Of a stretch of 64,000 nucleotides of DNA, positions 13,818 through 15,976 are shown one piece after another. A program made the translations under genes and the position numbers. Source of the DNA: Podarcis muralis (lineage: Eukaryota); NCBI RefSeq assembly GCF_964188315.1, contig NC_135658.1:11036001-11100000 (forward strand), written 5' to 3'. The notes beneath the pieces are model-generated. The model was not told the origin of the DNA. It made no database searches and saw nothing but the letters and a program-made list of their open reading frames with translations. Numbering within the stretch: the first letter of the stretch is position 1; every line of letters begins with the position of its first letter.

Positions 13818-14087
13818 AAGGAACCTGCCTTATGCCAAATCAGACCACCAGCCCCTCTAGCTCAATATCTGTCTACACTCTGGCAGCAGCTTTGTGGAGT
13901 TTCAGGCAAGGAAAATTCCCAGTCTTGCCCAGAGATGCTGCCGAGGACTGGATTTTGCAGGTGAGGCGTGGGACCTACCACTGAGCTATAATAATAACAA
14001 TGATAATAATAATAATAAATTTATTATTTATACCCCACCCATCTGGCTGGGTTTCCCCAGCCACTCTGGGCAGCTCCTAACAGAATA

Positions 14088-14310
14088 CAGTGGTACCTCA
14101 GGGGTTAAGTACTTAATTCGTTCTGGAGGTCTGTTCTCAACCTGAAACTGTTCTTAACCTGAAGCACCACTTTTAGCTGTGCTGTCAGAGCACGATTTCT
14201 GTTCTCATCCTGAAGCAAAGTTCTTAACCTGAAGCACTATTTCTGGGTTAGCGGAGTCTGTAACCTGAAGCATATGTAACCTGAAGCGTATGTAACCTGA
14301 GGTACCACTG
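14088..14310. mobile_element. Tc1/pogo-type MITE, family A (CAGTGGTACCTC...)
   Basis: TIRs with TA TSD; copies at 25010-25251, 32225-32449, 41974-42215, 43336-43565, 44070-44300, 47846-48076, 54205-54438, 59204-59445. Confidence 0.9.
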
Positions 14311-14383
14311 TATTAAAAACACGATGAAAGATCAAACATTAAAAACTTCCTGAAACAGAGCTGCCTTCAGATGTCTTCTAAAA

Positions 14384-15069
14384 CAGTGTTTCCCAACCTT
14401 TTTTGGGCAAAGGCACACTTGTTTGATGAAAAAAATCTTGAGGCACACCACCATTACAGCCCCGTGACGTCAGCGCGCAGCGTCACGCCGGGAGGGAAGG
14501 GCGCCGGGGCGCTGCTGCTGCTGCTGCCGCCGCCGCTCCCGGCAGGCATGGGCCCAGCTGAGGCGGCGGCGGCTGTTGTGGTGGTGGCGGCGATAGCGGG
14601 CGGAGGAGGGGGCGGCGGCGGGGCCAAGGTGGCCGGCGGCGGCGGGGGAGGCGGCGGCGGGTGGAGCAGGAGGGCGGCCGAAGCCGGTGAGGGAGTAGGG
14701 TTGCCCGGGGCTTGAGGAGCCGTCGCCGGGAGTTGCTGCTGCTGTTGTTGCTGCTGCTGCCCGGACATGCCGGCCTCCTCCTCGTCCGCTGTCTCGCGCT
14801 CCTCCCTTTTGCGCGCGCTGCCCCGCCGCCGCCCCATTGGCCGGGTCCTGTCAGCTGATCCTGTGTTATTTCCTGTGTGTGTGTGTGAGGGGAGAATGGA
14901 GAGAGAAACCTCGGCACCACCACCGCGGAGCCGCCCCCGGCTCGACGCGGATCCTCGCCGCCGCCGCCCCGCCTCTCGCCGCCCGACTCGCCCGCCTCCC
15001 TCCCACGGCACACCAGGGAACGTCTCGCGGCACACTAGTGTGCCGCGGAACACCGGTTGGGAAACACTG
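14384..15069. mobile_element. Non-autonomous hAT element carrying a captured RANBP9-like gene fragment (Pack-hAT)
   Basis: Perfect 15-bp TIRs CAGTGTTTCCCAACC; perfect 8-bp TSD TTCTAAAA (14376-14383 and 15070-15077); inserted into an L2 3' fragment. Confidence 0.9.
14493..14830 (-). pseudogene. RANBP9: Captured fragment resembling RANBP9 exon 1 (5'UTR plus about 90 N-terminal codons; ATG at 14768)
   Basis: MSGQQQQQQQQQL...AALLLHPPPPPPPPPATLAPPPPPPPP...APFP matches the order of motifs in human RanBP9 (MSGQ...QQQQL...AALLLHPPPPPPPATAAPPPPPP...APFPHG); low complexity limits certainty. Confidence 0.75.
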
Positions 15070-15301
15070 TTCTAAAAGTCAGGTTGTTGTTTATTTCCTT
15101 GACATCTGATGGGAGGGCATTCCACAGGGCGGGCGCCACCACCGAGAAGGCCCTCTTCCTGGTTCCCTGTAACCCCACTTCTCGCAGTGAGGGAACCGCC
15201 AGAAGGCCCTCAGAGCTGGACCTCAGTGTCTGTGCTGAACGATGGGGGTGGAGAGGCTCCTTCAGGTATACTGGGCCGAGGCCCTTCCCGCTGGCTTTCC
15301 G

Positions 15302-15976
15302 CTACCACCAAGTGAAGAGAAATTTGTAGAAGTAGTCATTGGATTTGAAGCGGAAACCCTTTTCCGGAACGTAGCCCTGGAGAGAGATCTTGTACCCTTT
15401 GGCCTCCACGTCAATCTTGATGCAGTCGAGTAGGTCAGAAATGCCCGGAGAGGCTTTCCAGGGTCCAAACTTGACCACCGATTTCTTGTAGGAGTCCAAG
15501 CCGTTGAGGGTGTCATGGCACTTGACGACATCCTCATCGGTCTTCATCACGCACACCATGACGCTGGACTGCCGGGCCGCCACCGCTTCTGCCCTCGCGA
15601 TGCGGATCATCAGCTCGATGTTCTCGTTGTAGCTGGGCACGCGGGCAAGGAACTGTTTCCTGGCCACCAGCTCCCCAAAGATCTGGGGAGAGTCCTCCAG
15701 CTGCTTGACCAAAGGCTCGATGTCGTAAAAGAGGGCTTCCTTGTACACCTCCTGGACGCAGTTCGTGGGCACCTGGTTGCTGCGCAGGTATTCCAAGATG
15801 TACTTGAAGTAAGTCCCGGGCCGGTCTATGAAATATCTTCCCTCGGGGTCTGTGCGGGGCTTGGTCTGCCCACTGGCAAACATCTCAGCCAGCTTGGAAC
15901 CCGGGTGCTTCTTCAAGGTGCTTAGGGTGGTGGTGAATATCTCCCCGCCAACATTGAGCTCTATGATTTGAGACTG
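15302..15976 (-). CDS. KCTD14: KCTD14 coding exon 2, BTB/POZ domain protein (QSQIIELNVGGEIFTTTLSTL...FLFTWW*)
   Basis: T1-type BTB motif; KSVVKFGPWKA and terminal FTWW match KCTD14; synteny; ttccag acceptor (tandem CAGCAG allows 15976 or 15973). Confidence 0.95.
   Translation of the reverse strand, partial: QSQIIELNVGGEIFTTTLSTLKKHPGSKLAEMFASGQTKPRTDPEGRYFIDRPGTYFKYILEYLRSNQVPTNCVQEVYKEALFYDIEPLVKQLEDSPQIFGELVARKQFLARVPSYNENIELMIRIARAEAVAARQSSVMVCVMKTDEDVVKCHDTLNGLDSYKKSVVKFGPWKASPGISDLLDCIKIDVEAKGYKISLQGYVPEKGFRFKSNDYFYKFLFTWW

Follow-up and report, generated by a model that had tools for sequence, protein, structure and literature searches.

The window analyzed here, a 64,000-nucleotide stretch of the Podarcis muralis genome (contig NC_135658.1, positions 11,036,001 to 11,100,000), contains at 14384-15069 a non-autonomous DNA transposon of 686 bp that carries the beginning of the gene RANBP9 as captured cargo. 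Read directly from the sequence, the region 14376-15077 has the layout TTCTAAAA - CAGTGTTTCCCAACC - 656 bp - GGTTGGGAAACACTG - TTCTAAAA, in which the outer octamers (14376-14383 and 15070-15077) form a perfect 8-bp target-site duplication (TSD), and the 15-mers inside them (14384-14398 on the plus strand and 15055-15069 on the minus strand) are perfect terminal inverted repeats (TIRs), the right one being the reverse complement of CAGTGTTTCCCAACC. The coordinates and lengths are thus those claimed in the initial annotation. Beyond this pairing the left TIR has no further match in the window; even with up to two mismatches, the 15-mer occurs at only these two sites, against 0.25 expected, and by our own arithmetic the chance of a perfect 15-bp inverted repeat adjoined by a perfect 8-bp direct repeat is about 3e-6 per window of this size. 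Between the TIRs, the order is a left subterminal arm (14399-14486), RANBP9 codons 1-94 on the minus strand (14487-14768), about 21 nt of RANBP9 leader directly upstream of the ATG (14769-14789), GC-rich cargo of unverified origin (14790-14951), and a right subterminal arm (14952-15054). We confirm that the element is a genuine Pack-hAT copy.

Both the ends and the arms point to the hAT superfamily. The TSD has the 8-bp length typical of hAT insertions, and the TIRs, which begin with CAGTG, agree with the short (~10-25 bp) hAT repeats that start with YARNG. The hAT target pattern is nTnnnnAn, and TTCTAAAA fits it. Five of the nine GGCACAC motifs in the window lie no more than 65 nt from the element ends (at 14412 and 14442 in the left arm, and at 15007, 15029 and, on the minus strand, 15038 in the right arm), the other four being found in the remaining 63.9 kb. 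The right arm also contains 22-nt direct repeats at 15001 and 15023 and a perfect 22-nt palindrome at 15026-15047. Subterminal repeats of this kind, characteristic of hAT elements, would serve in transposase binding. Reading the open reading frames (ORFs) revealed no transposase gene in the 686 bp, which are too few to accommodate one. The left arm belongs to the transposon backbone: it has no match in the squamate RANBP9 loci, and its read depth is about ten times that of the cargo, which indicates that it is common to many other elements. We presume that the TIRs resemble those of Charlie/SPIN-like hATs. Altogether, the element can with good confidence be classed as a non-autonomous hAT transposon of the Pack-TIR (transduplicated) type. 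Just past the RANBP9 breakpoint, the left arm holds the perfect palindrome TGACGTCA (14465-14472), of the cAMP response element type, within an imperfect GTGACG...CGTCAC hairpin.

In composition, the element stands out sharply from its surroundings. The G+C content increases from ~45% in the flanks to 66-81% inside, the interior lying at 70-77%, and the 538 bp at 14463-15000 have 75% G+C and an observed/expected CpG ratio of 0.93, versus 0.53-0.61 in the flanks. This segment therefore exceeds the thresholds by which CpG islands are recognized in sequence (at least 200 bp, G+C of at least 50% and an observed/expected CpG ratio of at least 0.6). The foreign GC-rich DNA inserted in the backbone measures 465 bp, of which at least 303 bp (14487-14789) correspond to the RANBP9 leader and the first 94 codons.

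The DNA into which the element is inserted (14000-14383 and 15078-15290) is itself a repeat, present at about 1e5 copy-equivalents according to depth in four lizard runs. When contigs of four public runs, carrying four organism labels, were aligned on 14000-15450, all four showed many other copies of the host repeat passing from 14383 straight to ~15086 with a single TTCTAAAA. In addition, contigs beginning at 15070 are preceded by ...GGCTGCCTTCAGATGTC, i.e., by the sequence that precedes the left TTCTAAAA. These other copies thus have the form expected of an empty site, and since they contain the octamer once, its duplication arose at insertion. The host repeat, which had been called L2, could equally be a short interspersed element with an L2 tail; 16-nt units (TGTAACCTGAAGC...) repeated in tandem form its tail at 14223-14306, and it reads ...RAFSVVAPALWNALPSDVKEINNNLTFR... 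on the minus strand.

GC-rich low-complexity DNA within a high-copy repeat is a typical place for assembly errors, and one contig related to the element family (L002, see below) is an example of the odd joins that occur in short-read contigs of this family. It might therefore be argued that a GC-rich fragment was mis-joined into the repeat. Such an error does not yield perfect TIRs together with a perfect TSD, though, and the left junction is found in independent data. Using a 70-nt probe (14345-14414), in which 30 of the 40 possible words cross the junction, we sampled five words, four of which are present in 19 runs of six organism labels (A, B, E, F, G and H); they are absent from organism I. 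Of the words that make up the entire 851-bp stretch, moreover, as many as 86% occur within single runs. The presence of the junction words in 19 independent runs shows that the junction is no artefact of assembly, an explanation to which we assign next to no probability. Hence, the insertion is not species-specific: it is common to at least six species labels, which implies that these taxa separated only after it, or one identical to it, had taken place. Alternatively, the common junction words could stem from an independent insertion into the corresponding position of a different host-repeat copy.

The identity of the cargo follows from its coding part. A minus-strand ATG at 14768 opens a frame of 104 codons, MSGQ(Q9)...(P9)ATLA(P8)..., which ends in PGVTLRADVTGL and a stop codon; the motif order given in the initial annotation, MSGQ-polyQ...AALLLH-polyP-ATLA-polyP...APAPFP, is exact. 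Among 5.8 billion proteins, phmmer found only two relatives of this ORF, P0004 (E 8e-17) and P0001. The latter represents the beginning of a further element copy. The former is the 153-aa product of the Logan contig L001 and reads on past the element breakpoint; it matches human RANBP9 (7nsc_A) with an E-value of 1e-41, and RANBP10 more weakly, from which it follows that L001 contains the true RANBP9 exon 1 of another squamate. The relationship is also evident at the DNA level: blastn aligns 14776-14486 with L001 1537-1818 at 72.8% identity over 309 columns, including 45 gaps (E 2.6e-51), and three further squamate RANBP9 loci (L003-L005) give a comparable match. Multiply aligned with P0004 and P0133, the element frame has an identity of 77-78% to both and is colinear with them through all non-repetitive blocks, including SSAPAPFP, and it diverges from every aligned RANBP9 sequence directly after APAPFP (codons 1-94, MSGQ...APAPFPPG, being covered by the protein and DNA comparisons). 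Residues 65-92 are identical to the P. muralis protein model P0124, which runs on past the breakpoint. The TIR is absent from the RANBP9 exon-1 loci of four other squamates.

It may be asked whether the resemblance to RANBP9 merely reflects a chance similarity of low-complexity GC-rich sequences (polyglutamine, polyproline and runs of alanine, threonine and serine). All frames of the cargo DNA contain long ORFs, composition-corrected BLASTP gives an E-value of only 0.005, and a PDB search with the ORF alone returned chance matches and no RANBP9. Likewise, an exhaustive search of a representative library with the ORF retrieved one sister copy and two unrelated repetitive proteins, but no RANBP9, and a longer 199-aa reading frame used as query found nothing new. 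The poor BLASTP value is due to the low complexity of the region, which also defeats phmmer against PDB, so that the link to RANBP9 came only through P0004. Against a chance resemblance, the non-repetitive blocks occur in order and colinearly, the sole two relatives in 5.8 billion proteins are a RANBP9 exon 1 and a sister copy, sister copies continue into the unmistakable conserved part of RANBP9 exon 1, and the ATG context and leader match as well. We consider coincidence very improbable and attribute the coding part to RANBP9, as the initial annotation had done; the complete lack of a non-repetitive match, which would have spoken against it, is not what the alignments show. The element does not contain a functional RANBP9 paralogue, because the ORF ends ten codons past the breakpoint, before the conserved ALNEQ...SPRY part, and SPRY, LisH, CTLH and CRA domains are missing. 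Nor is there support for a retrocopy: there is no poly(A), and the cargo lies within TIRs.

The element is a member of a family, as the initial annotation had suspected; both protein models and read depth, which lies in the thousands, attest to this. The sister copies were identified as P. muralis UniProt models by the P0004 search and a cluster look-up. At least 16 distinct short models are built on family copies, and they take four forms. Models of form (a) (P0124, P0008 and P0011) keep the exon-1 sequence through ...RVHYKG; in P0124, the 27 residues that follow the start are identical to residues 65-92 of the element frame. In form (b) (P0013 and seven cluster mates), a frame-shifted reading of the polyQ-to-AALLLH DNA is joined straight to EKELKRRL, and in form (c) (P0025, P0046 and P0132), it is the right-arm reading GGERRGGGGEDPRR (GGE(R/K)RGGGGEDPRR) that is joined to EKELKRRL. 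Form (d) (P0009, P0125, P0127 and P0130) ends in ...HYKG-WETL plus D, LYSIYTT, T or L. When translated, the TIR GGTTGGGAAACACTG gives GWETL, and the residues beyond it differ among the four models, so that here the exon abuts the transposon end at different insertion sites. The similarity of the sister copies to P0133 ends at HYK. The many short P. muralis models, two of which are named RANBP10, look like annotation artefacts; the family already generates spurious gene models in this species, and it should be masked in lacertid annotation.

Because sister models contain the full exon, the family once carried the whole of exon 1. In these models the 3' end of the exon faces the same TIR as in the copy at 14384-15069. 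Judged from the models, the 686-bp copy is an internal-deletion derivative that lost everything from HGGD onward, and different internal deletions probably produced subfamilies, each with several diverged copies. The junction of form (d), AAAGGT, is common to the exon/intron boundary and the left end of the element (...AAAAAAGGTTGGG), and this may be microhomology of the type expected for repair-type deletions. The earlier proposal that the element captured exon 1 and stopped just before HGDSALNEQ therefore holds for the capture of the exon but not for the stop, which is a secondary internal deletion, since sister copies continue to RVHYKG.

Upstream of the ATG, the origin of the cargo is clear over a short distance. 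The ~21-nt leader (GCGGACGAGGAGGAGGCCGGC) shares 8-9 nt before the ATG with L001 and L003, and L004 matches 19 of 20 nt (GCGGA.GAGGAGGAGGCCGG) at the same distance from the ATG, a score reached by 2 of 200 dinucleotide shuffles. Past ~14789, there is no alignment in either orientation to the RANBP9 upstream DNA of the four squamates (L001 and L003-L005), and both arms compared with the same loci give nothing except the proximal 21 nt and one odd 23-mer. The initial annotation, which had included the RANBP9 5' untranslated region (5'UTR) in the cargo, is thus borne out for ~21 nt above the ATG, while 14790-14951 is without detectable match in four other squamates. With its CCAAT box (minus strand, 14836-14840) and GC boxes, this minus-strand segment, which also contains (TG)7 at 14874-14887, may be the lacertid RANBP9 5'UTR or promoter. 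Some family copies lack an 81-bp stretch (14829-14909) that holds the CCAAT box and (TG)7: the corresponding joint, 14828>14910, occurs in all four runs, and the subfamily so defined is represented in the DNA of two species and in RNA reads.

The 23-mer is located at 14978-15000 and matches exactly L001 1219-1241, ~305 nt upstream of the RANBP9 ATG, in an orientation inverted relative to the coding part; its local score of 23 compares with 11.1 +/- 1.6 for mononucleotide shuffles. It lies within a 52-bp stretch of the right arm (14952-15003) that no other part of the element equals in abundance or depth and that, with loose ends at both margins (14952 and 15003), has other neighbours in most copies; for this reason it looks like backbone. 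A further Logan contig, L002 (1-1751), starts like the RANBP9 frame of the element, with 91% identity over 163 nt and without a TIR. At a 16-nt inverted repeat (GCCCCGCCGCCGCCCC), it switches into another CpG-island-like region, which contains a likely non-coding first exon, and then into unique DNA. As it leaves the RANBP9 frame after 163 nt and continues into unrelated DNA, we rejected L002 as the parent locus; it is a chimera or else a relative with a different load.

The abundance of the family was estimated from read depth in organism B, using a single-copy contig beside the repeat (depth 122) as reference. The summed depth, which does not equal a true copy count, is ~4.6e5 at the ATG and leader (14766-14786), 2.0e5 in the 81-bp stretch, 1-2e6 in 14955-14996 and 3e6 near the TIR, the latter being ~25,000 times the single-copy contig at the ends. 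The coding part (14500-14764) was masked in the read alignment (one alignment masked 14430-14764). Taken together, these values suggest, very roughly, 3,000-4,000 copies with the RANBP9 start, ~1,600 that include the 81-bp stretch, and 1-2.5e4 elements with a common backbone. Concerning age, the contigs of organism A (aligned at 90% identity or more) comprise 827 with an identity of at least 99%, 609 with 95-99% and 144 with 90-95%, and the copy at 14384-15069 differs from the family majority at ~4 (14425, 14439, 14784 and 15018) of ~371 scorable sites. We conclude that the family is young and that this copy has diverged little from its master. The description of the element as young is hence appropriate for the family, whose contigs are mostly at least 95% alike; for the insertion, whose junction occurs in at least six species labels, youth is relative.

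Transcription of the family is detectable. One RNA run (X23, raw reads) contains 311 reads on 14765-15030, obtained from 12% of the run, and those on the cargo come from both strands in similar numbers. Along the element, RNA depth follows the number of DNA copies, and for RNA and DNA alike, the depths at 14787-14807 and 14850-70 stand in a ratio of ~3. The reads fit passive transcription of many copies; they constitute no evidence for promoter activity, and none can be assigned to the 14384-15069 locus. These data bear on the idea that the family, being the same transposon, also acts as a mobile CpG-island promoter, with a cargo (CCAAT box, GC boxes and RANBP9 start site) that remains unmethylated and initiates transcription at many sites, which would be part of the reason why the subfamily was retained. 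Such a role would agree with the CpG ratio of 0.93 that a copy with a junction common to several species shows over 538 bp (75% G+C), with the RNA reads of both strands on the cargo, and with the situation in bat Helitrons, where no class of cargo is amplified more than captured 5' gene ends (PMC4224331). Yet RNA depth that tracks copy number is what read-through or DNA carry-over would give, ~311 reads for thousands of copies without strand bias on the cargo are few, and the retention of CpG needs no special explanation at ~1% divergence. We therefore regard a promoter function as unlikely.

Based on the above, we favor the view, to which we give a probability of about 85%, that the element is a non-autonomous Pack-TIR hAT with a RANBP9 exon-1 cargo that was amplified and whose present form derives from deletion. 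An ancestor of the family would have acquired RANBP9 exon 1 and some DNA on either side of it at the DNA level, likely either by a template switch while an excision gap was being repaired or a fork had stalled, or through the joint movement of two neighbouring elements as a single unit. The loaded element would then have been mobilized by a hAT transposase whose gene lies elsewhere, microhomology-type internal deletions would have generated several subfamilies, and the 686-bp form, without the exon from HGGD onward, would be one that kept amplifying. Several observations weigh against this view, besides the failure of the ORF to retrieve RANBP9 directly and the indirect nature of the depth estimates: the 64-kb window contains neither a second copy or fragment of the element nor an autonomous partner with the same ends, 14790-14951 could come from another locus, and the RANBP9 loci compared are those of other squamates, which leaves the boundaries of the cargo and its identity to the parent provisional. 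The cargo is dispensable for movement and codes for no working protein. If it affects the host at all, it would do so by scattering CpG-island-like DNA, and any function beyond selfish spread is conjectural.

It should be noted that the element is of a known kind, i.e., a product of transduplication by Pack-TIR/hAT transposons, and that it is notable mainly for its copy number. In animals, gene fragments captured by TIR transposons have been regarded as rare and nearly always single-copy: a survey of 100 animal genomes found 370 Pack-TIRs, 208 of them in hAT elements and only four of them multicopy, and its text makes no mention of lizards (Tan et al. 2021, PMC8277862). Our literature search found no publication that links RANBP9 with Podarcis or contains the TIR string. 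A hAT that had captured a gene start and multiplied into the thousands in wall lizards would demonstrate how effectively host DNA can be amplified through transposition in a vertebrate, and it would offer a natural setting in which to study whether CpG-island fragments, once dispersed, remain unmethylated or give rise to new transcription start sites.

The closest counterpart within the same superfamily is Pack-hAT-N8_XT of Xenopus tropicalis, which contains 291 bp of the CAPSL 5'UTR (PMC8277862). Like the RANBP9 element, it is a non-autonomous hAT with TIRs and an 8-bp TSD that carries a fragment of the 5' end of a host gene and moved after it had been loaded. It exists in three copies, however, whereas the RANBP9 family would, by depth, number in the thousands, has several deletion subfamilies and extends across several lizard species. 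As far as the account cited in PMC4224331 goes, the closest high-copy parallel in a vertebrate is the Helitron HelibatN3 of Myotis, which amplified the promoter, 5'UTR, first exon and part of intron 1 of NUBPL to a copy number of about one thousand (Pritham and Feschotte 2007), and among bat Helitrons it is the 5'-end gene cargo that reaches the highest copy numbers. Both cases concern the 5' end of a vertebrate host gene amplified by a DNA transposon, but HelibatN3 is a rolling-circle element without TIRs or TSD, so that its capture and spread are unlike those of a cut-and-paste hAT. Finally, the Pack-MULEs of rice preferentially duplicate GC-rich gene fragments and sharply raise the local GC content where they land (PMC5861414), which resembles the jump from ~45% to ~75% G+C at the RANBP9 element. 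We consider it a tentative and rather doubtful possibility that gene starts with CpG islands are the habitual target, and source of copied DNA, of a hAT lineage in lacertids, and that through the RANBP9 subfamily CpG-island-like fragments were dispersed by the thousands, a part of them now working as new promoters, first exons or methylation-free islands. If true, this would be a vertebrate counterpart of the rice Pack-MULEs driven by a cut-and-paste element. The Pack-MULEs differ in that they belong to the Mutator superfamily, with TSDs of 9-11 bp and long TIRs, occur in plants, and carry many cargoes at a low copy number each, as opposed to the one cargo at a very high copy number of the RANBP9 family.
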